A program made the position numbers and the translations under genes. Positions 1 through 60,244 of a DNA stretch of 64,000 nucleotides are shown in pieces. The DNA comes from Octopus bimaculoides (Eukaryota), in assembly GCF_001194135.2 (NCBI RefSeq), contig NC_068986.1, positions 11,404,959-11,468,958 of the forward strand. The letters run 5' to 3'. Each line of letters opens with the position of its first letter. The stretch's first letter is position 1. Below the pieces are notes generated by a model. The model was not told the DNA's origin and ran no database searches. It was given only the letters and a program-made list of their open reading frames with translations.

Positions 1-732
1 TTGTTGCCATTATCTTAATGTAGGTTGCCACATTGATCCTAAGACCTTGTGGAAAAAGTGAGGAGGCATGAGATAGCTCTCATTGCTCGAAAACCATCAC
101 AGACAATGAAAACTTGTGCATAATAACTGGGGACTTTAGTGGGGCTGGCATAGAGCCATCTGTCATTCCTCCTGTTCACTTGTCATAGGAACCAGAGCAT
201 GTCAAGCTCCTCAGAGTGCATGAATTTGTGCAGTAAATGCTTTGACTGGGTCACATGGTTCTCCCAAGTCTTATTGGATATGAACTGTCCCCCTTTTGTT
301 AATAAGAGATTTGTGCCTGATCTCTGTGCACCACATGTCTAATTGTTGACTCTGTTACATAGAAATGATTGGTAGTGGTCCTTATTGACTTGCTAGGATT
401 CTCATTGATGATGTCTGACTGTTGAGAATGCTTTTTCCTTTTGGTCACAGAAGACATATTCCTGCCAAAGGTTAGCTCTTTTCTAATCTTAAACACAAAG
501 GGCCTGGTGACATTTAAGAAGGTTGCAATCTCAGAATCAGTCTGGTTACCAGCTAAGGTGATGAGAATGTTATGCCTTGTCATCCGCATTAAGATTTGAC
601 CCTTCCATGTTGGGGGCTGAAGAAAAAAATGTTTTTAATAAAAACAAAAAAACAAAAATAGGGGATGTTTAACATTTGGGCCACTTATGGTTCTTAAAAT
701 GTCTTGTTTCCAAATTGCTGAGATATCCTGTG
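1..732 (-). mobile_element. Degenerate Tc1/mariner-superfamily transposon (maT/DD37D-like), 5' part, runs off the window start
   Basis: Minus-strand translation gives MTRHNILITLAGNQTDSEIATFLNVTRPFVFKIRKEL...RKKHSQQSD...ENPSKSIR...STIRHVVH. Across stops and frameshifts it continues GGQFISNKT, MLWF, VNRRNDRWL, MPPHFF and NVATYI, all typical of this family. CAGGATATCTCAGCAATTTGG at about 730 resembles a CAGGGTG-type TIR. Confidence 0.8.
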
Positions 733-2699: not shown

Positions 2700-3013
2700 A
2701 CTCATTTCAGTCATTAGGCTGTGTGGCCATGCTGGGGTACCACCTTGAATGTTTAGTCGAATGGATTGACCCCAGTACTTATTCTATCAGGTTTTTTTTT
2801 TTTTGCCAAACTGCTAGGTTATGGAGATGTAAACAAACCAACACTGGTTGTTAAGTGATGGCAGGGCTCAGACACAGGCACAAAGACATACGTATACATA
2901 TAAGGGGCTTGCTTTGGTTGGCCCAAGACACTCGCCCAAGGTGCCACACAAAGGGACTGAACCCAGAACCACGTGGTTAGGAAGCAAGCTTCTTACCACA
3001 CAGCTATGCCTGT
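2700..3013 (-). mobile_element. tRNA-derived SINE, family A
   Basis: Reverse complement of the 3041-3432 copy; the head lies at the right end. Confidence 0.8.
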
Positions 3014-3040
3014 GCTTATTTATAGAAAAAAATAAAAAGT

Positions 3041-3194
3041 GGCTGTGTGGTAAGTAGCTTGCTTACCGACCACATGGTTTTGGGTTCAGTCCTACTGCGT
3101 GGCATCTTGGGCAAGTGTCTTCTACTATAGTCTCGGGCCAACCAAAGCCTTGTGAGTGGGTTTGGTAGACGGAAACTGAAAGAAGCCCGTTGTA

Positions 3195-3237
<43 letters not shown>

Positions 3238-3432
3238 TTGTCCCCCTAGCATCGCTTGACAACTGATGCTGGTGTGTTTATGTCCCCCGTCACTTAGTGG
3301 TTCAGCAAAAGAGACTGATAGAATAAGTACTAGGCTTACAAAGAATAAGTCCCCAGGGTCGATTTGCTTGACTAAAGGCGGTGCTCCAGCATGGCCGCAG
3401 TCAAATGACTGAAACAAGTAAAAGAGTAAAGA
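3041..3432 (+). mobile_element. tRNA-derived SINE, family A, near full length
   Basis: A box (GGCTGTGTGGTAAG), B box (GGGTTCAGTCCT), GGCATCTTGGGCAAGTGTCTTC core, (TA)n(TG)n linker and GAAACAAGTAAAAGAG tail. Dozens of related copies occur in the window. Confidence 0.85.
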
Positions 3433-8504: not shown

Positions 8505-9592
8505 GTCACTCATGTCGCTTTAAATGAACAGAATCAGTGATAGTGAGATAGAGAGAGAGTGAAGGCCTTTTAGTTTTGCTGTAGTCAAAAGGACCTCTCT
8601 GGTGCTAATATGCTGATAAAATGCATTGGGTACATTCTGTAAAGTATTTGGTGAGTGAAAGGAGACAACATAGACTAGAGGAGGCTCTTTAGTCTTGCTG
8701 AGTACACAACCCCTTTTGTGCTGGTGCCCTGATGAAGTACATCTGGTACTCTCTGTAAAGTGTTTGGTGTTTAAGGGTAGTACTCAATCCTGTCAAAAGT
8801 GGAACCAACAAACAATATTGGTCCAGACTTGCCCGGGAAGGGAATCAATTTCAAATTGGAACTAACTTAGAGTGTAATGGCCCATCCAGTGGATGTTAGC
8901 ATGGAAGGTGGATGTAAAATGATGATGATGGTGATACTGATAATGACTTCTTGTCACTAAATCCCTTCAGTTAATTTTCACTAAACCTTTGAGACCATGC
9001 TGGATTACTGCCATAGAGGTCAGCTTGAGACAAAAATGTCTTTACACAAAAATATATAATTTTGGGAAGAAAGAAAAATTACATCTTTTTTACTTTGATA
9101 TTCAGCCAATTTATCAGGTAGAAATGGAAGTAATCATGATGATGATGGTGATGGTGATAGCAACAGTTTGACTCTCGAGTTTCAAAAGTACATAAGTCAC
9201 ACTGCAATCAATTTGAATTGAGTGCTTTTGGCTGCAGTGTCTTCAACTGCTTTCATTTCAGTCTATTGGATTATGTAAAGTTTATCTCTTTTAATACCAA
9301 CCCACCTGAGACACCCCCCCCCCCCGCCACTGGTTCTATGATACAAACTGCCTATTTAAAGTGATCTAAATTAAAAACTTCCATCAAAATGTCATGTTAA
9401 TTCGTGTTCCAAACACCAGCTTTAATATCAAGAGTTATTATACTAAACTCTTCATTATTTTCTAAATTAAAATAAGGGCAGTGCATTTCATGGTCATGAA
9501 AGGGTTTAAATAAATGACCATTCCATTAGGCAATGTTTGTTCTGTACATTATTTATATTTCACAGATATTTTTCCTCATCTTATTTGTTGTT

Positions 9593-9638
9593 AACACAAC
9601 ATTTCGGCTGTTATACCCTCCAGCCTTCATCAGGTGTC
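9593..9638 (-). ncRNA. Minimal type-I hammerhead ribozyme motif (C15.2>U variant)
   Basis: Reverse complement reads GACAC CTGATGA A GGCTG GAGGGTATAA CAGCC GAA ATGT T GTGTT. Confidence 0.5.
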
Positions 9639-9685
9639 TTGGGGAAATTTTGAACCTGGGTTCTCATTCCTAAGGTATTTTTCAA

Positions 9686-9726
<41 letters not shown>

Positions 9727-9944
9727 TCACTGCTTGGAATCAAACTCAGAATCTCGGGGTTAGTAGCCCACGTTCTTAACCACTATGCCATATGCCCATG
9801 GGTGTAGTGGTTAAGAGTGCAGGCTACTAAACCCAAGATTCCGAGTTTGATTCCAAGCAGTGATCTGAATAATAATAGTAAAATAATATTAATAACATTG
9901 AAAAATAACTTAGGAATGAGAACCCAGGTTCAAGATTTCCCCAA

Positions 9945-9990
9945 GACACCTGATGAAGGCTGGAGGGTATATCAGCGGAACCGTTGTGTT
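9945..9990 (+). ncRNA. Minimal type-I hammerhead ribozyme motif, probably inactivated
   Basis: GACAC CTGATGA A GGCTG GAGGGTATAT CAGCG GAA CCGT T GTGTT; two substitutions at core-flanking positions (11.1 and 15.1). Confidence 0.45.
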
Positions 9991-10727
9991 AACAACAAAC
10001 AAGATGAGGACAAATATCTGTCAAATGTAAATAATGTAAAATAATTCCTCATCTCTTTAATATAGAACTGTATTGTTTGTTCTGGTTTTGTTGAAAGGTA
10101 GTTGTAGAAACATCTGAGCAACTTCTGAAACAATAACATAAAAATTACATGGAATATAAACAATATTTTATAGGAGGACTAAATGTCTTCTCATTTTATA
10201 CAGCTTCTTTACATATCAATTATCATGGTTTTCTTGACAATTTTATTCATTTTGAAGGTCAACAAATTTTTTAAATACCTTTTATTTTTCAATGATAATG
10301 TTTTTATCCCCAACTTATCTGTTTTCTTTTTTCATCTTCCTCCCTTGCAAGTTTGTTTACACAAACACCAGGAAAATCAATTATCATTGACAATCATCAT
10401 CACCAAGACAAGGTGAACCCTGGTGGGAGTTCCTAAATCGAAATCCCTTCTTGACTAAGCAACCAAGCTTATCCTCCCACCTCTCAATTGTTTTGCCATT
10501 TGTGCAAAATATACCTCACTGAAGAGGTGTAAATAAGACTGAAACAAATCCATTGGCATTTTCTGTATTTTCAAAAAATTTCAATTAATTGCTCCCAACT
10601 ATGGTCACCATACAGTGTTTGAAATAACTGTGGATCTCAAAACAATCCAGTGAAGCTACAACTTCAGCTAGTGGGGAAAGTCTGTAAAAGTTAAGACTCT
10701 ACTTCCGAGAATGAAGGCAGGAAAGAT

Positions 10728-15725: not shown

Positions 15726-17309
15726 AGATTTATGTATACCAATGGGAAGGTTTGGTCACTGGTTGTTCTTTCCAAAATTAACACAAGTAATAATTAGTTT
15801 CTCGCTCACAGAAATCCAATAACAATGAATTTTGTCTTCAATTGTAGTCGTTTCACCATTTATAAATGCTGCTCTGCTTGATTTCCTTTCTATTTAATAT
15901 CAAACGTACAAAAATACTGTCATAATTTTCAGTGTATTAGTTCCAAGTAAGTGTATTATGGTTTTGTTATTTGTCCCCAACCACCGCCATTGTAATTCCA
16001 GAAATGATGCTGTTGGCTGCACACCAGTAGTGGAACTGGTTCTTTGGCTTTTAAGTCAACTGCTCAGTTAACAATGAAAATCTCGTATTTTATTGGCCTT
16101 TGATAATCAATAATCTCGGACATAATTATGATAATTAAAATTCCTGTCTCTGTTTTTGCATGTTAATCTATTTCCTTTCTTGCTGCTACAAGAACTGGAG
16201 AAGGGAATTATTACATATAATGGAGTATCTCTGACCTAAAATGTAGCTAAATAAGAATTAGAAATTATATTTACTAGAATTGACATCTTGTTGAATGTTA
16301 GCATCGAAAGGAAAAAAAAAAAACAAATATACTATTTTTAGTACTTACCAAACGACCTTTCCTTTCGAGCTTAGATTGTAGTTTACACTTGATGCACTTT
16401 GTCCATCTATACTTCTATTTTCAGTTTGGGACTTCATTTTTTTCCCCACACCCTCCAACCAGAATATTCCTTAACTTTGTCAGTTAATGTTTCAGTGTCA
16501 TCAATAACTGTTCATTCATAACTCTACTCTGTCGTCGTCATCATCATCATCATCACCACCATTTAGTGTCAGTTCTCCTTGCTGGCATGGCTTGGACAGT
16601 TTGATGGGAGCTGGCAAGTCGGAGAGTTGCACCAGGCTCCAATTATCTGTTTTTGCATGGTTTCTACAGCTGGTTGCCCTTCCTAATGGTAATTACTTGG
16701 TATTTTTTTTATTATCTCACCCCCATTAAAAAATTGGGTTATCTCCCCCTGTTTTATGAAAAATTTATAACAAATCATACCATTCCTATTGAGGAGGCCA
16801 AACATCAACAATGTGCTGAAGTATTGAATCAAAAGGATCTTAAACCTTTTTAATCCAATCTCTTGTCAACTCATAAACTCAATTTTTTAGTGGGGAGATA
16901 ACCCAATTTTTTAATGGGGGTGAGATAACCAAAGAATACCAATGACTTTACGGTGTGTACTGGATATTTTTTACATGGCACCAGTAGTATTAGTTATGAT
17001 ACAGTGGAAGTATACTTTTATCATTGAGTGTAACATCAGCAACTATGTCATACATACAGACAATAATTATAATTTAACTTGCAGCAAATTTCTTAGTGTT
17101 TATACAAAATGATGAAATGAATGCTAATTTTCAAAAGAAAAATATTCGTTTCCTTAAAGTAAGATTAAATAAAACAAATTTCTCAATAAATATATGTTGT
17201 TCTTTTTCTAATATTTATGAGCATAATGGCAGCCTAACCCATCGGAAACACATTTTTGCAAAAATTTCATTAAAAATATGTGTATTGTTCAGAAAGAGAA
17301 AGTTATAAG

Positions 17310-19170: not shown

Positions 19171-19695
19171 CCCCCCCCCACACCTGATCTGTTAATGTTT
19201 GGTAAAGATTTTCTGAAATTAGGTTTTTTTGACATTATTACATTTTAAGATTTCATATGATAAGTAATATTATTAGCTGCACTTGTTCAAAGGTTGATAT
19301 CAGTATTACATAGAAGCAGAGGCAAAATATTTCAATGGGTGGCATTAATTTGCTAAGTTGGATTAGTACAGATTAGTTAGACTAATGTTGAATGCATCGG
19401 GTTTCTATAATTTAATTAACTCTTTCTTGTGCTTATACTTCTTCGAAATATGAGGAAGAATTTGAATGCAGTGTGTGTGTGTTTATGTGTATAATTTTAC
19501 ATATAATGAGCATGATAAAATTATATCTGTATGTAACCAAAACTCAAAGCAACCTTTTGGGTCAATTTAAAATGATAAATTTGATATATTTTAATGTAAC
19601 TGTCTTACAGTTTTATATTTAAGAGATGAGGAATTATGTACATTATTTAAATTATTTACATTTGACAGATATTTGTCCTCATCTTGTTTGTTGTT

Positions 19696-19741
19696 AACAC
19701 AACGTTTCCGTTGATATACCCTCCAGCCTTTATCAGGTGTC
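19696..19741 (-). ncRNA. Minimal hammerhead motif, inactivated (G8>A)
   Basis: Reverse complement reads GACAC CTGATAA A GGCTG GAGGGTATAT CAACG GAA ACGT T GTGTT. Confidence 0.4.
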
Positions 19742-19975
19742 TTGGGGAAATTTCAAACCTGGGTTCTCATTCTTAAGGTATTTTTCGATATTGTTGTTCT
19801 TATTATTATTATTCAGGTCACTGCCATATGCCCGTGCACATATGGTGTAGTGGTTAAGAGCGCAGGCTAACCCCAAGATTCCAAGTTTGGTTCCAGGCCA
19901 TGACCTGAATAATAATAATAACAACAACATCAAAAATACCTTAGGAATAAGAACCCAGGTTCGAAATTTCCCCAA

Positions 19976-20021
19976 GACACCTGATGAAGGCTGGTGGGTA
20001 TATCAACCGAAACGTTGTGTT
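19976..20021 (+). ncRNA. Minimal type-I hammerhead ribozyme, core intact; predicted cleavage after U20016 (GUU)
   Basis: GACAC CTGATGA A GGCTG GTGGGTATAT CAACC GAA ACGT T GTGTT: 5-bp stem I, stem II with one mismatch, palindromic ACGU stem III. Confidence 0.62.
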
Positions 20022-20306
20022 AACAACAAACAAGATGAGGATAAATATCTGTCAAATGTAAATAATGTAACTGTTTTATTCTTCAATTTGAATATCATCT
20101 TTGCTCAAAACACACAGCTGAGTGTTTCCAAATCATATTCACTATGATCACCTCTGCCCCTATTTACTGTTTCTATCTTTAAATGTAGGTTCTCTTCATT
20201 GTCACTCCAACTCTCCAATCTTTCGCATGTTAAATTGAAGGATTACTCAATACATTTAGTAGAGTATAAATTATTCTTTAACAAGAAAAGTATTGTTAGT
20301 GACTGA

Positions 20307-22797: not shown

Positions 22798-23315
22798 ATG
22801 AAAAAGGAATTCAATATTCTTTTCTACTCTAGGCACAAGGCCCAAAATTTTTGGGGAGGGGGTCAGTTGATTAGATCGACCCCAGTACACAACTGGTACT
22901 TAATTTATCGACCCTGAAAGGATGAAAGGTACAGTCGACCTCGGTGGAATTTGAACTCAGAACATAAAGACAGACAAAATACCACTAAGCATTTGGCCCG
23001 GCGTGCTAACATTTTTGCCAGCTCGCCACCTTTAATGAATTCAATATTGTCNNNNNNNNNNATGAAAAAGGAATTCAATATTCTTTTCTACTCTAGGCAC
23101 AAGGCCCAAAATTTTTGGGGAGGGGGTCAGTTGATTAGATCGACCCCAGTACACAACTGGTACTTAATTTATCGACCCTGAAAGGATGAAAGGTACAGTC
23201 GACCTCGGTGGAATTTGAACTCAGAACATAAAGACAGACAAAATACCACTAAGCATTTGGCCCGGCGTGCTAACATTTTTGCCAGCTCGCCACCTTTAAT
23301 GAATTCAATATTGTC
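22798..23315. other. Exact 254-bp tandem duplicate around a 10-N gap (unmerged contig overlap); contains a family B SINE
   Basis: 22798-23051 equals 23062-23315; N at 23052-23061. Confidence 0.85.
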
Positions 23316-24150: not shown

Positions 24151-24537
24151 NNNNNNNNNNNNNNNNNNNNNNNNNNNNNNNNNNNNNNNNNNNNNNNNNN
24201 NNNNNNNNNNNNNNNNNNNNNNNNNNNNNNNNNNNNNNNNNNNNNNNNNNNNNNNNNNNNNNNNNNNNNNNNNNNNNNNNNNNNNNNNNNNNNNNNNNNN
24301 NNNNNNNNNNNNNNNNNNNNNNNNNNNNNNNNNNNNNNNNNNNNNNNNNNNNNNNNNNNNNNNNNNNNNNNNNNNNNNNNNNNNNNNNNNNNNNNNNNNN
24401 NNNNNNNNNNNNNNNNNNNNNNNNNNNNNNNNNNNNNNNNNNNNNNNNNNNNNNNNNNNNNNNNNNNNNNNNNNNNNNNNNNNNNNNNNNNNNNNNNNNN
24501 NNNNNNNNNNNNNNNNNNNNNNNNNNNNNNNNNNNNN
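24151..24537. other. Assembly gap (others at 25222-25231, 30035-30518, 42644-43394, 60200-60244)
   Basis: Runs of N, mostly bordered by microsatellites. Confidence 0.99.
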
Positions 24538-25221: not shown

Positions 25222-25231
25222 NNNNNNNNNN

Positions 25232-28590: not shown

Positions 28591-30644
28591 CTATGTCTCA
28601 CATTTATTTTTTACTTGTTTAGTCATTAGACTGTTGCCATTTCTGGGGCACCACCTTCAAAAATTTTGGTCTGATGAATTGGCCCCCAATACCTATTTAT
28701 TTTTGTAAAGCCTGGTACTTGTTCTGTCGGTCTCTTTTGCCGAACCACTAAGTTGCAAGGATGTAAATGCACCAACACTGGTTGTCAAGTGGTGGTGGGA
28801 GACAGACAGGCACACATATGCACACACACGACAGGCTTCTTTCAGTTTCCATCAACCAAATCCATTCACAAGGCTTTGGTCAACTCGAGGCTATAGTAGA
28901 AGACACTTGCCTAAGGTACCACACAGTGGGACTGAACCCAAATCCATGTGATTAGGAGGCAAACTTCTTACGACACAGCCATGCTTGTGCATATCTACAT
29001 ATATATAATCATTGTTTAATATCTGTCTTCCATGCTGTCAACAGGATCCACGAAACTAGGGGACCATGTTAAGCTCCTGTGTCTTTTGACATGGTTTCTG
29101 TGATTGAGTACCCTTCCTGATGCCAGACATTTTACAGAGGGCACCAGCACCAGTAAGGTCACCAAGTAACCTACAAGGCAAGGCTCCACGCAGATGAGTG
29201 GGTGGGTGCAGTATTGGAGGAGACAGCTTGACGCCAAACTGTTTAGTTACAGGGACATAAATTAACCAACACCAATTGTCAAGTGGTATGCAGGGGACAC
29301 ACGGACACACACATGGCAGGCTTTTATGTCATTTCCACCTACCATATTCACTTACAAGGCATTAGTTGGCCTGGGGCTATAATAGAAGACTCTTGCCCAA
29401 GGTGGCACACAGTGGGACTAAAACCAAAACCATGTGGCTGCAAAGTAAGTGTCTTAACCACGCAGCCATCCTTATGCTTGCAATCTTTAAAGATAGACAA
29501 GGATCTGTCTATTTACAATTTTGTGTATTTGGTAGTTTTATTTTATTCTTTATTTTTTTTAATCCACTTTTTAATAAAGAACTGGAGCCAAACCTAATTT
29601 CTTAGACCTTGATACTTTGTTATCATTGTGCAGGATTCTTGAATATTAATTTCTGAAATGTTTTTGACAAATACTGCACATATTTACACATTCTTGGTCA
29701 CTTCTACAAACATAGGAATTGGCATGAATCCAGTTCTTTCTTGATTGCAAGAACACCCCTCCCCCCACTCTCTTTCTTTCCTTCTGTCTAGCTCCTCACC
29801 TTTCTCTCTCACTAACTCACTCCCACTTTCTCTTTCACCCATCTCTCCCCTCCTCCTCTTCCTCTGCCTTCCTCTCTCCCCACTCCTTAAACTGTTCTCT
29901 TTTCTGTTTTGGTCACATTATTTCCCTCCTTTGTTTTGAGGCGAAAATTGTAGAAGTTGCAATAGAAATTTTATGGAAGAAAAATTATTTAAAGTTGCCT
30001 CTTCCTCTCCCTACCGTTTTCCTTTTTTATGGTCNNNNNNNNNNNNNNNNNNNNNNNNNNNNNNNNNNNNNNNNNNNNNNNNNNNNNNNNNNNNNNNNNN
30101 NNNNNNNNNNNNNNNNNNNNNNNNNNNNNNNNNNNNNNNNNNNNNNNNNNNNNNNNNNNNNNNNNNNNNNNNNNNNNNNNNNNNNNNNNNNNNNNNNNNN
30201 NNNNNNNNNNNNNNNNNNNNNNNNNNNNNNNNNNNNNNNNNNNNNNNNNNNNNNNNNNNNNNNNNNNNNNNNNNNNNNNNNNNNNNNNNNNNNNNNNNNN
30301 NNNNNNNNNNNNNNNNNNNNNNNNNNNNNNNNNNNNNNNNNNNNNNNNNNNNNNNNNNNNNNNNNNNNNNNNNNNNNNNNNNNNNNNNNNNNNNNNNNNN
30401 NNNNNNNNNNNNNNNNNNNNNNNNNNNNNNNNNNNNNNNNNNNNNNNNNNNNNNNNNNNNNNNNNNNNNNNNNNNNNNNNNNNNNNNNNNNNNNNNNNNN
30501 NNNNNNNNNNNNNNNNNNCAAAAAGGCTGTACAGCCAGACATTTATATGTATATATATATATATATATATATCTAGTGTATATGTATGTATATATGTGTA
30601 TATATATATATATATGTGTATATATGTACATATATACATATATA

Positions 30645-33900: not shown

Positions 33901-34164
33901 CAACAAAGTTGTTTTACTAAATTCTTCATTGCTTTGGAAAATTAATTGAAATAAAACACATTTATTTCAACAGAAACAGGGTAGTGAAATGATTAAACTA
34001 CATTTTGAACAGAATTCTTGCCGTAACCATCTTTAGTAGGTAAAGTTTAATATTTAAAGGGTGTGGTTATCTTTAAAAAGGGTTGCTTTTGAAAGGGCTA
34101 CTATATTGAAGGGAAACTTTATACATTGAAGCCTGTTTCCCACTTTAATAATAATAGATAATAA

Positions 34165-34915
34165 TAATGATAATGCATCAAATTTTAGCACAAAGTCAGC
34201 AGTTTTAAGGGGGTGGAATTAATTGATTATATCAACCCCAGTACTTGACTGGTACTTTATTTTATTGATCTTGCAAGGATGAAAGGTAAAGTTGATATCA
34301 GTAGAACTTGAGCTTGGAACATCAAGTGTTTGAAGAAATACCACCCACTGAGCATTTTGTCTGATTCACCAACTATTCTGCTAGCTTACTTCTTTAATCA
34401 TGATTATAATAAGTAAATAATAATAGTAACAAGGTGGTGAGCTGGCAGAAATGTTAGTGTGCCAGGTGAAATGCTTAGCAGTAGTTTGTCCATCTTTATG
34501 TTCTGAGTTCAAATTCCACCGAGATTGACTTTGCCTTTCATCCTTTCGAGGTCGATAAATTAAGTACCAGTTGCATACTGGATCGATCTAATCGACTGGC
34601 CCCTTCCCCCAAAATTTCAGGCCTTGTGCCTAGAGTAGAAAAGGATAATAATGATAACAATAATAATAATAATAATAATGATGATGATGATGGTTTTAAA
34701 TTTTAGCATAGGGCTAGCAGTTTTTGAAGGGAGGGAGAAGTCAGTTATATTGACCCCCCCCCCTCCAGTACTTGACAGGTACTTATTTAATCAACCTTGA
34801 AAAGATGAAAGGCAAAGTCAACCTTGACAGCATTTGAACTCGGAGCATAAATCTGGCCAAAATGTTGCCAAGCATTTTGTCTGGTGTGCTGACGGTTCTC
34901 TCAGCTTTTGCTGCT
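34165..34915. mobile_element. Three family B SINEs in minus/plus/minus orientation
   Basis: Plus copy 34431-34650 (AAGGTGGTGAGCTGGCAGAAA...GTTCTGAGTTCAAATTCC...TTGTGCCTAGAGTAGAAAAGGA) flanked by reverse-complement copies. Confidence 0.8.
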
Positions 34916-35936
34916 TCATAATGAAAATAACAATGTCATCTTTATGTCAAAAAAAATTTTCAAGTAGGTGTCAGCTGTCTACATGGAGCAAACACTGGCA
35001 TTTGATTGATACATAAAATTGTTTGATTATTGAATGTCTTTCTTGTTTCCAGCCTCTGAATACTGGGGCTTGAGATGCAACAGATTTTAGCCATTGCTCA
35101 AAAATTACAAAGGTTGTTATAGACCCTTCATTTAACATTTGTTTTTGTAGTACTAAGTTGTTTTGGTAAATCTCACCCACCCAATATGATGTTGGCAGTC
35201 TATTGCAAGTATCCCTTTCTGTTACTATTTGGCTCCTATTTTTTTTAGGAGAATTAGAAGTATCTTCTCAACACAAAATTCCTGCTATTGAATATCAATT
35301 TATGATATTGATCTCTTCGTCTATAAATCCTATTCTATTTTGCTGAGAGTCATGATAAGACAAACGCAGAATCATCACCATTGTTTTAATGTCCACTTTT
35401 GCATGCTCCATGGGCTGAATGGAATTTGTCCAGGCAGCTTTTCTATGGGTGGATGCCATTCCTGTCACCAACCCTCGCCTATTTCCGAGTAAGGTAATAT
35501 TTCCCCATGACCAGATTTGTCTTGGAAAATTGGAAATGAAGGATGTTGCTTGCATGACAGTAACACTTGTTACTGCATAGAAAAGAAGTGTATCAGATAA
35601 TAAACCTGGAATAATTAGACCAACGGGCCTTGTTCAGTAGGAGTGTCATGAGTGGGAGATATGGTTTAGCTCTTTATCTTGTTAACTGTTCTAATTTGTA
35701 ATGTCATAAGTAAACAGTTCCTACATGTAATCTGTTTAAAAAAGGGTTATTATTTATTGATCTCAAATTTGTAGACTTTTCATATGAATGGTTTGTTGTA
35801 GGTTTTCTCATATCTCTCTAGTTTTATGCTATTGATTGTTACAATGTTGGTTGTGGTATGGTTCAGAAACCACAGAAGATCATGTGTACATAAGCAACAC
35901 ACCTCTCTGGAAAATACACATGCAACACAATACACA

Positions 35937-40470: not shown

Positions 40471-43413
40471 ATTCACTATCAGCACACATTGATCTTTGTC
40501 TATAATTCCCAGCTGCTTTCTCATCTCATTAGCACTCTGACTTTTATGCAAATCTATGTCACAAATTCAAATTAATGCTATTCATTCTTGGTCATTTCTC
40601 TCCTGTCTTCATAGATCTTCCATGTTCATTGACTGCATGCCATGGTCATGCTACAGCACAATTATTACACATGTTAGAGTAACTATAGTTGCTAATAATA
40701 ATTCTCTCCTTTTTTTGTGTGTGTGTGTGTGTGTCATTCATGTTTTGCATCTCTGTTTAAACACATCAAGTTTTACTCAAACTGCTTTATTGCAAGAATC
40801 ACAATTCATACAGTTCCTTCCTTCCTTCCTTTCTTGTATTATCTTTTCAAACCCTTTAACCCAGCATTAATTTCACCAAAGTCTTTCTGTTTTTAGACCC
40901 TTATTGGATGCAGAAACAGGATGAAGCACATTTTGTGTTTGTGTCATCACAGTGTTGTATTAAAATAGTGACAGACTCTGTTGATTATCTTTTAGCCTTT
41001 TTACTTGTCTCAGTCATTGTACTGTAACCATGCTGGAGCACCACTTTGAAAGGTTTTAGTTGAACAAATTGACCCTAGTACTTATGGTTTTTTTTTTTTA
41101 AAGTCTGGTATTAATTTTATTGGCTACTTTTGTTGAGCCACTATGTTATAGGGCTGTAACAAACCAACACCAGTTATCAAGTGCTGGTGAGGATCAAACA
41201 AACAAACACACACGCATGTGCGCGCTGGGTTTCCTCACAGTTTCTGTTTACCAAATTCGTTCATGAAAGCATTAGTGGTTGGCATTAGCAAGGGCATCCA
41301 GCTGTAAAAACCATGCCAAAACAGACAATTGGAGCCCAGTGCATCTCCTGGCCATACCAGCTCCTGTCAAACCCATGCCAACATGGAAAACAGATGTTAG
41401 ATAAAGATGATGATGATGACTCACAAGGCATTGGTTGAGCCGGGGTTATAGTGGAATATACTTGCGTAAGGTACTGCACAGTGGGACTGAACCCTAAATT
41501 ACGTGGTTGCAAAGCAACCTTCTTAACCACAGCCATAGCTACATCTATTGTAGCAGTTTCAAAAATGAACTTTAATCTTCTGTGAATACTGACTTCTCAC
41601 TTATAGCACAAAGACATGTAAGAAATAAGTAATTTAAACCAAACTCTGTACATGCTCTGTAACTATTTTATTAGCCCCATAAAAGATTAACCCTTTAGAA
41701 TTCAGATTAGTCTGTCAAATTTAATACATATGTATTCACATTGTTTTGAGTTAATTCAGCATTATCTTGTAGACTCGAGATTTCAATGATGTGATTCTTT
41801 TGCTTGTTTCAGTCATTAGACCGTATGTGCATATACAGTCATTAGGGGCTCTACCTTGAAGAATTTTTAGCTGGTCAAATCAACCCCAGTACTTATGCTA
41901 TTGGTTTCTTTTGCCAAACTGCTAAGTTACAGGGACGTAAACACACACACACCAACACATGACGAGCTCTTTTCTACCAAATCCACTCACAAAGCTTTGG
42001 TTAACCTGAATCTATAGCAGAAGACACTTGCCAAAGGTGCCTTGCAGTGGGACTGAACCTGGAATCATGTGGTTGGGAAGCAAGCTTCTTACCACCCAGC
42101 CACATCTGATATTGTACATTTTGTGTGAGAGGCCAGTTTGAACATAAAACAGGTAGAATATCTGGGCTGGATATAGGTTGGTATAAATGCTAAAGTGTTA
42201 GAATAATTTCCAGATGGAATGGGGGCTAAATGGTAGTGCAAAACGCTTAATATGGTGTTCCAGTAGTTTTTGTTATCATGCTGTTTTCACAATATTTTTT
42301 GAGATAAAAATGTTAAATTAATATGAGCTTCCTTCTTAGAATATAATGAAATAATAACGTTATTCTTATTTTAAACTCATTTACATATTTTCAACTAGCA
42401 AAACATTGAAAGTATTAAGTCTTCGGTATATTCATGTGTGCAATGTAATAAGCCCAGTTTCTAATATAACCATCGTGAGTGATGCTTCTGTATAAAACAT
42501 GAGCAAAAAACTGCTGCTAATAGTTTAAAATCCATCAAAGAATGGATTTTTTTTTTTAACACACACACACAATGTCTCTGTATCAGCTCATGTACCCAAA
42601 TGCTGACACAAATGTATATAGGTATATATATATATATATATATNNNNNNNNNNNNNNNNNNNNNNNNNNNNNNNNNNNNNNNNNNNNNNNNNNNNNNNNN
42701 NNNNNNNNNNNNNNNNNNNNNNNNNNNNNNNNNNNNNNNNNNNNNNNNNNNNNNNNNNNNNNNNNNNNNNNNNNNNNNNNNNNNNNNNNNNNNNNNNNNN
42801 NNNNNNNNNNNNNNNNNNNNNNNNNNNNNNNNNNNNNNNNNNNNNNNNNNNNNNNNNNNNNNNNNNNNNNNNNNNNNNNNNNNNNNNNNNNNNNNNNNNN
42901 NNNNNNNNNNNNNNNNNNNNNNNNNNNNNNNNNNNNNNNNNNNNNNNNNNNNNNNNNNNNNNNNNNNNNNNNNNNNNNNNNNNNNNNNNNNNNNNNNNNN
43001 NNNNNNNNNNNNNNNNNNNNNNNNNNNNNNNNNNNNNNNNNNNNNNNNNNNNNNNNNNNNNNNNNNNNNNNNNNNNNNNNNNNNNNNNNNNNNNNNNNNN
43101 NNNNNNNNNNNNNNNNNNNNNNNNNNNNNNNNNNNNNNNNNNNNNNNNNNNNNNNNNNNNNNNNNNNNNNNNNNNNNNNNNNNNNNNNNNNNNNNNNNNN
43201 NNNNNNNNNNNNNNNNNNNNNNNNNNNNNNNNNNNNNNNNNNNNNNNNNNNNNNNNNNNNNNNNNNNNNNNNNNNNNNNNNNNNNNNNNNNNNNNNNNNN
43301 NNNNNNNNNNNNNNNNNNNNNNNNNNNNNNNNNNNNNNNNNNNNNNNNNNNNNNNNNNNNNNNNNNNNNNNNNNNNNNNNNNNNNNNNNNNNNNGTGCCT
43401 ATAGAAGAAAAGA

Positions 43414-53300: not shown

Positions 53301-53833
53301 CTTGCATTTATTTATATGTTACTAAGGGAATGAAGGTTGAAACCACTTTATAACCTTGCCATATTGTTCCCACCCACTCAGTTCAAGCCAATTCTTCCAT
53401 TTGCAATCGTCACTTGTTTTTACACTGAGGACTAGGCATCTACATTTATTAGATAAGATAAAGTTTTCTTTTTTCTTTTTTATAGAAGCTGAAGATAAAG
53501 TAGAACCCATCTAAATAGACATTTAGCTTACTGTTTTGTAAAGAATAATGGGGGTGGGGGAAGAGAAAATACCTATCTTAAACATTAAGTTTACTGTTTT
53601 GCAACAACCAATTTCATTTATAACTCGGCTCTTGACTCTAAATAGTTTCTCAACAGCTGTTTCACTGGCAGTATAACAATGATGCTGTCAGGGTCATTCA
53701 CCAAAACCAAACAAGGAAAAATGATCATGGATATGAAATGGACTAGACTAAATAATCATACCAATGATGGTGCTCCAGCATGGCCACAACCCCTGGTTGA
53801 AGCAAGGAAAATTATGTGTGCATGCACACACAC

Positions 53834-54943
53834 AGATATGTTTAGTACACTCTGTAAAGTGGTTGATGATAGGAAGGGTACCCAGCTATAGAAAACACTG
53901 CCAATGTAGACATTGGAGCTTAATGTTGTCCCCAAACTCATTGGATCCTACAAAACCACTCCATCAGCACAGAAGGAAGATATTAAATGGTAAAGATATG
54001 TACATATATATCTACAGGGTGATTCAAAATTTCCGCACAGGAAAAATTAATTTTTCTATAGAAAACAGTTTTCAAGATTTTGATAAGTGTAACACATCCC
54101 AGCCACTACTGTCCTCAGTTCTAGTCCAAACCAAATTAGTAGCACCTATCAAAGTCCCAGGTATGGGTCAACTAGCACATTAAGGCCTGCCTGCCTGTGG
54201 AGACTATCATGTAGAAACTTTCATGGTTCAACAGAAAGGAAGTTTGGCTGCAGCAATGCATTGGAGAGAGATCAAAGTAAGGCAAATAAGACATCTTGGT
54301 CATCCACTGCCCCCATCCCCAGTCGCCTTGACCTGGTCTTGCCACTGGTTACAGACAAGAGAGTGAGGTTGGTGGTGTGCAACCCTTCTTCACTTTAAAG
54401 CTACCACTCATCCCTAAGGAGGACTAGATTGTCCTCATCATTCTTAAGGACGAACATGTGTGTGTGTGTGTGAAAAGTCACCATACAACAGGCTCTATAT
54501 GGTTACCATTGTTTTGAATACACATTGTAATACGTTTACCCCACTCATTGTAATCTTGTAATAGCACATCTAGTGGTACGTGTGCAAATGAGTTGGTGAT
54601 GCGTTCCTTCAAATGATTTATGTCTTTTATGTTTCCGCGATACACCATGCCTTTCAAACGCCCCCAAAGATAGAAATCAAGAGGGATCAGATTAGGGGAT
54701 CTTATAAACTGTTTTCTATAGAAAAATTAATTTTTCCTGTGCGGAAATTTTGAATCACCCTGTAGATATATATGTACATATCTTTACCATTTAATATCTT
54801 CCTTCTGTGCTGATGGAGTGGTTTTGTAGGATCCAATGAGTTTGGGGACAACATTAAGCTCCAATGTCTACATTGGCAGTGTTTTCTATAGCTGGGTACC
54901 CTTCCTATCATCAACCACTTTACAGAGTGTACTAAACATATCT
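53834..54943. repeat. Perfect 238-bp inverted duplication with a 634-bp spacer
   Basis: 53834-54071 is the exact reverse complement of 54706-54943 by my base comparison; the ORF track also shows the same peptide on both strands. Confidence 0.92.
54478..54764 (-). mobile_element. Internally deleted Tc1/mariner element: TIR joined to the transposase C-terminus
   Basis: TA-CAGGGTGATTCAAAATTTCCG end, then SPNLIPLDFYLWGRLKGMVYRGNIKDINHLKERITNSF and, after a frameshift, KRITMCIQNNGNHIEPVVW* (SPDLxPLDFxLWG motif). Confidence 0.8.
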
Positions 54944-54949
54944 TTATGT

Positions 54950-55311
54950 ATGTGCGCGCACGCGCACACACGTGTATAAAGCATGTACATATGTATACAC
55001 GTAACCACTCAAACGCACGCATCGGAGTAATAGCCCTTTATTTCGCATAATGTGGGCTGGCCAAACACCTAAACATTAATATTTATTAACACATATAAAT
55101 AAATATATTCTGATCTCCAGAAAAGCAAAAATGATATATATATAGATAAAATAAATTTTTAGTTTTCCGAAATTACTCGGAGAATGAAAATTGAAAATTC
55201 TATGGAAAATCATCATAAATGCAAAACTGGATGTAATGAAATCTCTTTGTTGCCGTTAAGAGCATATGCAAAATAAAATAAATAAATAAATAAATAAATC
55301 AAAGAGAATGA

Positions 55312-58870: not shown

Positions 58871-60244
58871 ACCATGCAACATATTCATACACACATATCC
58901 ACAATCAAAAGCGATAGTGATTTGTTGTATCGGACTAGAAATACGAGCAGACATTGGTAGCAACCGTTACGCATGCGTGTGTGAATATATGTAAATTGCA
59001 TGCTGACATGTGTCTACAAAGGTATACACACACACATACACACATACACGCGCCCCCCCCCGCGCACGCACAAACACGCACGCACACATCGTCATGTAAT
59101 AATGGAGGGCACTGTGTTGTGAAAATTCAATTAAATGCCTTCAACATAATAATGACCACTCGCCCTTACTTGAAATTTTTTCACGTATTTTTATTCCCCC
59201 CCCCTCTCCCCCCACTTTTTATCTTCAACACTTCAAACATATTTTTGTAAAATTTATTTATGGTTGTTTTTTTTTAAAGCTTAATTTCTTTAAAAAAATA
59301 TTTTATCACGATGGCAACCATCGCCGTCGTGGTTCTGGTTAGGGGAGAAAAAAGGCATTTTTATTTTATCTGCCGTTATTTCTTCCGTTTTCTTTGAAAT
59401 GGAAACACATGTCTATGTATTTATAACGATCGATGGTAGAGTTGTTGGTGATGGAAAAGACTAAATCTCTTCTCCACTAATGGTTATATGCTGTTGTTGT
59501 TATTATAACATAGATCTTGGTATTGTTTTAAAATGGACTGTTTTTAAGTCTTAAATAATTCAGGCGCTGCTCTCATTATATTTACATGTTCGTGTTTGTC
59601 TGCAAGTCGATTTACATCAGATTTTTCGACGGATCTCAACTGCAATCCCCGCTACATTTAATATATTTATACACCAGTCATGACTGCACCCTTTTATATC
59701 GTATCTATTTTACTCGAATCTTACGTATTAGGGGGACCTAATTCACATTTTTAGGTTAATTATTTTGATTAATTGTCATTGAATTACCTAATTATTCATT
59801 CCATAAATCTATTTTTCTCTTTTTTCAATGAGAATCGGTTTTGAATATAAAACCAAACATCTAATTTTTATGGTGAGAGAATTACTGAGAGAAAATTCGG
59901 TCAATATCTCGATTTATTTGTTGTAAATATAAATCAGTGTTTGGACATCGTTTTAGATATTTATAAATCTGTTATTATTTTTCAATTAACTGATTGAAAC
60001 ATGAAATTGAATACTTTACCAATGCTCATTTCAATGTCAACATATAACCCATTTATTTCATTTGAAGTGAATCCCGATCATTTTATTTATTTATTTATAT
60101 TTTTAATTAATCCGAAGATTAATCGGTGATGGATGCCTTCTTTATACTCCTTAGTTGCCTCGCTGGTTTTATATTTTATGAAAGCTCAATCACATTTATN
60201 NNNNNNNNNNNNNNNNNNNNNNNNNNNNNNNNNNNNNNNNNNNN

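Follow-up and report, generated by a model that had tools for sequence, protein, structure and literature searches.

The stretch analysed here, called the window throughout, comprises 64,000 nucleotides of the Octopus bimaculoides genome (NC_068986.1, positions 11,404,959 to 11,468,958, forward strand), and it carries two insertions of a short element whose two arms are arranged head to head as a palindrome. Copy 1 lies at 9545–10073 and copy 2 at 19606–20070, the two sites being unrelated; no further copies of the element were found in the window. On the evidence given below, the element is probably a short non-coding retroposon that joins the 5′-end of a short interspersed element (SINE) to a 3′-end resembling the repeats of Penelope-like elements (PLEs), and its mirror copy is probably built at insertion. 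The following features were assigned to the two copies:

Copy 1, 9534..9544, unstranded: left target-site duplication TGTTTGTTCTG, exact 11-nt repeat of 10074–10084
Copy 1, 9545..9798, minus strand: short (tail-less) arm, 254 nt, 3′-end at ...AAATAATGTA
Copy 1, 9799..10073, plus strand: long arm, 275 nt, with head, (AAT)n run, body, stem-loop and tail
Copy 1, 10039..10073, plus strand: tail, 34–35 nt, on this single arm only; the same tail occurs in the related loci L004, L006, L007, and L012
Copy 1, 10074..10084, unstranded: right target-site duplication, repeat of 9534–9544
Copy 2, 19592..19607, unstranded: left direct repeat TAATGTAACTGTCTTA, the final 2 nt overlapping the long-arm terminus
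Copy 2, 19606..19833, minus strand: long arm, 228 nt, tail at 19606–19646
Copy 2, 19834..20070, plus strand: short (tail-less) arm, 237 nt, with complete head
Copy 2, 20063..20078, unstranded: right direct repeat TAATGTAACTGTTTTA, the initial 7–8 nt being the short-arm terminus

The arms of copy 1 pair at 9545–9701/9882–10038 (157 nt, 93% complementarity) and additionally at 9709–9785/9805–9881, and those of copy 2 at 19647–19785/19932–20070 (139 nt, 94%). At the centre the arms share their first nucleotide and adjoin without any spacer (CCCA/TGGG in copy 1, GCCCG/TGCAC in copy 2). These coordinates bear out the initial annotation of this DNA, which had described two head-to-head arms at both loci and direct repeats around the whole palindrome. 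The 11-bp repeat that it gave for copy 1 is exact (TGTTTGTTCTG, 9534–9544 and 10074–10084); when random segments of 440–540 nt were drawn from the same window, 11-mers matching at the two ends were obtained in 87 of 2,000,000 trials. For copy 2 it had reported a repeat matching at 13 of 14 positions. A direct repeat is indeed present there, yet its length had to be corrected, as TAATGTAACTGT followed by C or T and TTA flanks the copy at 19592–19607 and 20063–20078 with 15 of 16 positions matching. Seven nucleotides of this repeat (TACATTA) are shared with the short-arm terminus and two (TA) with the long-arm terminus, and because of this overlap with both element termini the true duplication is 7–16 nt long. 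Since direct repeats bound the palindromes, each whole palindrome was deposited by one insertion event, as had been proposed.

At both loci one arm stops at ...AAATAATGTA and the other extends 34–40 nt beyond this point, namely 34–35 nt in copy 1 (10039–10073) and about 40 nt in copy 2 (19606–19646), which agrees with the approximately 30 nt noted before. The long arm is on the right side in copy 1 and on the left side in copy 2, again as first described, so the two insertions have opposite polarity. Similarity between the copies breaks off precisely at the element ends (TACATTATTT... on one side and ...AACTGTA on the other), and therefore they represent independent insertions. A segmental duplication of the two loci with shared flanks, which had been raised as an objection, was ruled out by the unrelated flanking sequences.

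Anatomy of one arm

Each arm is a SINE-like non-coding unit of about 240–275 nt, which consists, in 5′ to 3′ order and outward from the palindrome centre, of a tRNA-like head, an (AAT)n run, a body bearing a hammerhead motif, a stem-loop, and an optional tail. The elements of the arms other than the hammerhead motifs are as follows:

9780–9790, minus strand: A box TGGCATAGTGG of the copy 1 short arm, in the tRNA-like head at the palindrome centre
9736–9746, minus strand: B box AGTTTGATTCC of the copy 1 short arm, in the tRNA-like head
9688–9722, minus strand: (AAT)n run of the copy 1 short arm
9844–9854, plus strand: B box of the copy 1 long arm, whose head starts at 9799
9868–9895, plus strand: (AAT)n run of the copy 1 long arm
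10002..10054, plus strand: stem-loop with a 9-bp stem, AGATGAGGA (10002–10010) and TCCTCATCT (10046–10054), and 9–10-nt tandem units in the loop

The head begins with TGGGCATATGG, and its A box fits the consensus TRGCNNAGTGG with 0–2 mismatches. In the copy 1 short arm the B-box-like sequence AGTTTGATTCC (two mismatches) begins 44 nt past the A box, which is the spacing of a tRNA. In the copy 2 long arm the head retains its first 12 nt but has been shortened by about 48 nt between two GCA repeats. Other SINE families of the window have heads that can be aligned with that of the element and belong to the same tRNA-like type. Runs of four T residues are absent from the sense strand of all four arms versus nine on the antisense strands, a distribution that fits head-to-tail transcription by RNA polymerase III (Pol III).

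The pairing of AGATGAGGA with TCCTCATCT, which the initial annotation had recognized as closing a hairpin, is found at the positions given there, and folding predictions for the two long arms both include it. In the copy 1 long arm the tail-less 3′-end falls at position 10038, inside the loop of this stem-loop. A putative role of the terminal stem-loop as a recognition signal is plausible. The 3′-termini read either ...AAATAATGTA or ...ATATAGAACTGTA and carry neither a terminal simple repeat nor an A-rich end.

Another SINE-like family of the window, which ends in (AAT)n, is present in three copies at 34146–34920, lying head to head and tail to tail with 74–77% complementarity. By comparison with this (AAT)n tail, the element's head and internal (AAT)n run may go back to a simple SINE that was once separate.

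A Penelope-type minimal hammerhead motif

All four arms contain a minimal hammerhead motif of the Penelope type, in which helix III is absent. Its parts are helix I (GACAC/GUGUU), the CUGAUGA box, an additional base lying between positions 9 and 10.1, helix II including the G10.1–C11.1 pair, GAAA, the 15.2–16.2 pairing, U16.1, and U17, so that the body motif reads GACAC-CUGAUGA-A-GGCUGG...CAGCC-GAAA-C-G-U-U, then GUGUU. The four occurrences are:

9593..9638, minus strand: copy 1 short arm, minimal hammerhead with intact core, GACAC-CUGAUGA-A-GGCUGG..CAGCC-GAAA-UG-U-U/GUGUU
9945..9990, plus strand: copy 1 long arm, mutated (A15.1 to C; C11.1 to G)
19696–19741, minus strand: copy 2 long arm, mutated (G8 to A; C11.1 to G)
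19976–20021, plus strand: copy 2 short arm, intact core with one C.A mismatch in helix II

The catalytic core is thus intact in both short arms, and two mutations are present in each long arm. Minimal hammerheads of PLEs lack helix III and have a conserved G10.1–C11.1 pair, a palindromic 15.2–16.2 pair and a helix I of 4–5 bp, and pairs of them on opposite strands, separated by 100–700 bp, have been reported (Cervera and de la Pena 2014). The traits of the octopus motif are those listed for the PLE hammerheads, including the extra base after CUGAUGA. The copy 1 short arm has every feature of the PLE type, its 15.2–16.2 pair being a U.G wobble, and in the copy 2 short arm this pair is the palindromic CG. 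A pattern search of the window returned two matches, which were the two short arms, and none in 100 shuffled sequences; with a stricter minimal-hammerhead descriptor made for this analysis the copy 1 short arm still passed and 200 shuffles gave no hit. Across 13 related sequences the helix positions were paired in 77.7% of the cells versus 22–49% in slid controls. Judged from the sequence, the minimal hammerhead, which is absent from the initial annotation, is the strongest link of the element to PLEs; the motif may also be active as a ribozyme.

In two of the four arms one sense frame remains open, over 78 codons at 9808–10041 and over 98 codons at 19851–20144 (both plus strand), despite the AT-rich sequence. 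The same frame occurs as coding exon sequence in the O. bimaculoides gene model "dystrobrevin beta isoform X1" (P0001), and this model with its exonised piece is the only annotated protein that matches the element. Conservation of the frame largely reflects the hammerhead core.

Related loci and the unit that is inherited

Related copies were collected through an exhaustive profile search, for which the arm's open frame was the query and which yielded 37 short open reading frames (ORFs), and the contigs carrying them were then examined. Most of these ORFs are clear translated copies of the module, and the weakest few resemble chance matches. The related contigs originate from the sequencing runs SRR11869384–94 and one ENA assembly. 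Other searches were hardly productive: two conserved blocks of 20–28 nt used as DNA patterns found no viral and no metagenome contigs and one chance match in archaeal coding sequence, the protein word-index searches were nearly empty (the arm ORF retrieved the single O. bimaculoides gene model mentioned above), a chimeric six-frame query had no match, and the ORFs of the window were without counterpart in the protein collection. A mariner-like fragment used as a probe for octopus DNA retrieved a single non-octopus contig, in which the element is not present. The informative loci are:

L012: tailed inverted arm of about 75 nt, a filler of 18 nt, and a tail-less arm of full length starting with GGGCATATGG; duplication ATAAATAG(TA), 8–10 nt
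L006: inverted arm of about 55 nt with tail, adjoining the head of a full-length tail-less arm; duplication AGAAA(CA), 5–7 nt
L004: inverted pair with both arms tailed, one arm truncated within the CUGAUGA box; no duplication seen
L003: tail-less arm for which the profile search detected no inverted partner
L011: 129-nt tandem array of the module and an inverted copy with a tRNA-like head, arranged head to head

The array of L011 and the inverted copy that it adjoins lie at 9736–10379 of contig ctg121048l of the ENA assembly ERZ21867824; the array has 2.7 units matching at 98%, and the arrangement is retrozyme-like. Inverted partners in the related loci are about 55, 75, or 90 nt long or full length and, where a duplication is seen, lie with their copies within it. 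Every arm whose end is inside its contig terminates either after AAATAATRTA or about 35–45 nt further on, after ATATARAAC(TGTA). The length of the duplication varies, as the initial annotation had indicated: it is 11 nt in copy 1, 7–16 nt in copy 2, 8–10 nt in L012, 5–7 nt in L006, and none was seen in L004.

The initial annotation had taken the whole fold-back dimer of about 530 nt as the heritable master, the hairpin RNA of which would be copied whole by a Penelope-type enzyme. Several observations are compatible with such a master. Both window copies have the same architecture, with two full-length arms that meet without a spacer at an identical 5′ nucleotide and the tail on the same arm, and one site (C11.1 in the short arms, G in the long arms) separates the arm types alike at both loci. 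However, five of the six informative sites among the four window arms group by locus and only this one by arm type, and under a dimeric master each of the five mirrored substitutions would need two parallel changes. Moreover, the arms of one locus differ at 9–10 of about 148 positions, which is the sum of the private changes of each arm; it follows that the arms were near-identical at insertion, as is expected if both were copied from the RNA of one source lineage. The related loci with partners of about 55, 75, and 90 nt and the arm without a detected partner also argue against the dimer. Finally, both putative Pol III promoters face outward from the palindrome centre, thus neither can transcribe a hairpin RNA, and the T4 terminators lie on the antisense strands. 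The hairpin as the heritable, mobilized unit is therefore not upheld, and we regard it as unlikely. Since the partner lengths vary, the sites mostly group by locus and the promoters point outward, the mirror copy looks like a product of integration rather than a part of the template. We concluded that the palindrome is the unit deposited and the single arm is the unit inherited.

Integration and likeness to known systems

In published PLE insertions an inverted, 5′-truncated copy lies head to head with the main copy, palindromes occur at the junction, a tail of 30–40 bp is present at one end, and duplications are 8–10 bp long or missing. A purified PLE enzyme cleaves and extends both target strands in vitro, and it begins reverse transcription at two adjacent internal stem-loop sites, the tail being the sequence between them. 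The octopus insertions match this signature by the variable length of the inverted partner, the one-sided tail of 30–40 nt, the variable or absent duplication, and the minimal hammerhead, and their one-sided extension of 34–40 nt corresponds to the published Penelope tail. The link to Penelope suggested by the initial annotation is thus well supported by the tail, the duplications, the partners, and the hammerhead motif, and Penelope families are abundant and recently active in an octopus genome.

A retroposon of this kind would be mobilized in four steps. (1) Pol III would transcribe one arm from head to tail. (2) A PLE reverse transcriptase (RT)/GIY-YIG endonuclease supplied in trans would cut the two strands of an AT-rich target at points separated by a few to about 16 bp, a step that we infer from the published work. 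(3) Synthesis of cDNA would begin within the RNA at one of two sites, immediately preceding or immediately following the tail; two recurrent 3′-ends are observed, and these may represent the cDNA start sites. (4) The cDNAs primed from the two target strands, one per start site, would run to the 5′-end of the RNA and be joined head to head. The product would be a copy and its inverted partner, full length or 5′-truncated, within one target-site duplication. At the window loci both cDNAs would have reached the 5′-end of the RNA, giving near-perfect and essentially spacer-free palindromes. Pol III transcription, the Penelope enzyme, and the two-strand priming are all presumed in this scheme, and self-priming is the older published alternative to two-strand priming as the origin of the head-to-head copy. 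A more specific version, in which zero-spacer full-length pairs are the natural traces left when a dimeric Penelope enzyme carries out target-primed reverse transcription symmetrically on two strands, each cDNA being extended to the 5′-end of the RNA and then templating the other, is put forward only tentatively and is rather doubtful at present. If it were true, the element would provide a compact natural substrate for studying how PLEs build inverted and tandem repeats, and it would be a Pol III-driven SINE that depends on a PLE rather than on a long interspersed element (LINE).

Several results weigh against a Penelope-dependent retroposon inherited as a single arm. A Pfam scan of the window ORFs of at least 78 aa gave no matches and revealed no RT or endonuclease, and no autonomous PLE sharing the 3′ module was found, eukaryotic genomes not having been searched for one. 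The RT fragment of L011, the sole candidate for a PLE ORF at that locus, looks LINE-like by its motifs. The source genome has contributed only the two copies, and the other loci, 71–81% identical to the window arms, come from other assemblies. ARAGORN and Rfam call no tRNA in the head at default settings, only with relaxed thresholds, and the fold energy of the tail stem-loop is unremarkable (z about −1). The Rfam hammerhead models gave no match at E up to 10 in 9500–10100 and at E up to 1 in the related loci, a result expected for a motif without helix III. Covariation of the hammerhead helices is weak in the 13 related sequences, with one compensatory pair, which is not above shuffles, hence the structure call rests on the motif match and not on covariation. 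As to the inherited unit, the C11.1 site sorts by arm type at both loci, parallel CpG decay may account for one or more of the five by-locus sites, and the two full-length arms with the same junction in both window copies can also be explained by a dimeric master.

It is also conceivable, but improbable, that the element is an ordinary LINE-dependent tRNA-derived SINE whose pairs arose by twin priming, snap-back synthesis, or nested insertion. The tRNA-like head and the variable duplications would suit this explanation, and so would the 9–10-nt tandem units near the tail-less 3′-end, as found in some LINE and SINE tails; besides, the window is packed with SINEs, and further head-to-head SINE pairs occur in it. 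However, twin priming makes no mirror-image duplicate of the same segment, the 3′-terminus is not A-rich and has no simple repeat, and the one-sided tail and the minimal hammerhead are features of PLEs. The window's most abundant tRNA-headed SINE has, at about 2700–3425, two copies facing each other head to head across a 37-nt A-rich spacer, their heads being only 85% complementary; these look like independent neighbouring insertions and differ in this from the zero-spacer palindromes. A derivative of a cut-and-paste DNA transposon that has long terminal inverted repeats (TIRs), either a miniature inverted-repeat transposable element (MITE) or a foldback element, would account for the long inverted arms, for ends (TACA...TGTA) that recall TA-flanked Tc1-type ends and, if Mutator-like, for 9–11-bp duplications, yet it has next to no credibility, as the termini are asymmetric with a tail on one only, a TA duplication would need pre-existing 11-nt and 9-nt direct repeats exactly at both sites, the duplication lengths differ among the loci, and the related loci have grossly unequal arms. 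Both the Tc1-type TA duplication and the Mutator-type MITE were rejected owing to the asymmetric ends and varying duplications, and a TIR with a fixed duplication, named by the initial annotation as a contrary outcome, was not what the one-sided tail and the variable lengths revealed.

The window as a whole is AT-rich (35% G+C) and crowded with short repeats. It contains six N runs (23052–23061, 24151–24537, 25222–25231, 30035–30518, 42644–43394, and 60200–60244), mostly beside microsatellites; as these are assembly gaps, nearby repeats may be misassembled. Remnants of other mobile elements are also present. An inverted repeat of 263 nt with 97% complementarity (53816–54078 and 54699–54961, 620 nt between the arms) brackets the C-terminal remnant of a mariner-like transposase (54478–54726, minus strand), and the structure at 53816–54961 may represent either a long-TIR Tc1/mariner element with an internal deletion or an inverted duplication that arose locally. 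A 96-aa ORF at 299–589 (minus strand), cut by the window start, resembles the N-terminal helix-turn-helix of a Tc1/mariner-type transposase, with no Pfam match at E up to 0.01. The 45-nt inverted repeat at 16704–16748 and 16892–16936, with 93% complementarity and 143 nt between the arms, is possibly a small MITE.

Little is understood so far about the integration of PLEs, the chief puzzle being their inverted and tandem ends. Insertions of this element of about 275 nt keep all the junctions (the two 3′ start sites, the joint between the heads, and the duplicated target) and would therefore be a convenient natural read-out of the integration mechanism. The results also suggest that part of the large "unclassified SINE" fraction of octopus genomes may rely on Penelope enzymes and not on LINEs. 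Full inverted pairs in host transcripts would fold into double-stranded RNA of about 250 bp; any relevance of this to the heavy adenosine-to-inosine editing in octopus is speculation.

Among the known systems, PLE insertions and their pseudo-long terminal repeats share with the octopus element the head-to-head inverted copy, the palindromic junction, the tail of 30–40 bp at one end, the variable or absent duplication, the AT-rich targets, and the minimal type-I hammerhead in the repeat, and published PLE repeats alone suffice for mobilization in trans. Unlike PLEs, the window copies have no RT/GIY-YIG ORF and no direct (tandem) repeat, and the 5′-end of the element is a tRNA-like head and not the PLE promoter region. 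According to the definition in SINEBase, tRNA-derived SINEs have a LINE partner and end in a simple repeat; the octopus element lacks a simple-repeat or A-rich 3′ tail, and its 3′-end and insertion architecture are PLE-like. Short non-autonomous Penelope elements have been noted in butterflies. SMalpha and Sjalpha of Schistosoma are, like the octopus element, short, non-coding, dispersed and SINE-like, contain a type-I hammerhead motif and have a link to PLEs. They come from a different host phylum, however, and the likeness is one of described features; the hammerhead of SMalpha is canonical, has a short helix III and is recognized by Rfam-type models, whereas helix III is missing from the octopus motif. 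Animal (non-LTR) retrozymes are likewise non-autonomous, hammerhead-bearing derivatives of PLEs, and the 129-nt tandem array of the homologous module beside an inverted tRNA-headed copy in L011 resembles them. Retrozymes are defined by tandem arrays and circular RNAs, whereas each window copy is one inverted pair whose head is of the Pol III type. The element can thus be regarded as a new member, from cephalopods, of the known hammerhead-bearing, Penelope-linked retroposons, of which SMalpha/Sjalpha and the retrozymes are the closest.

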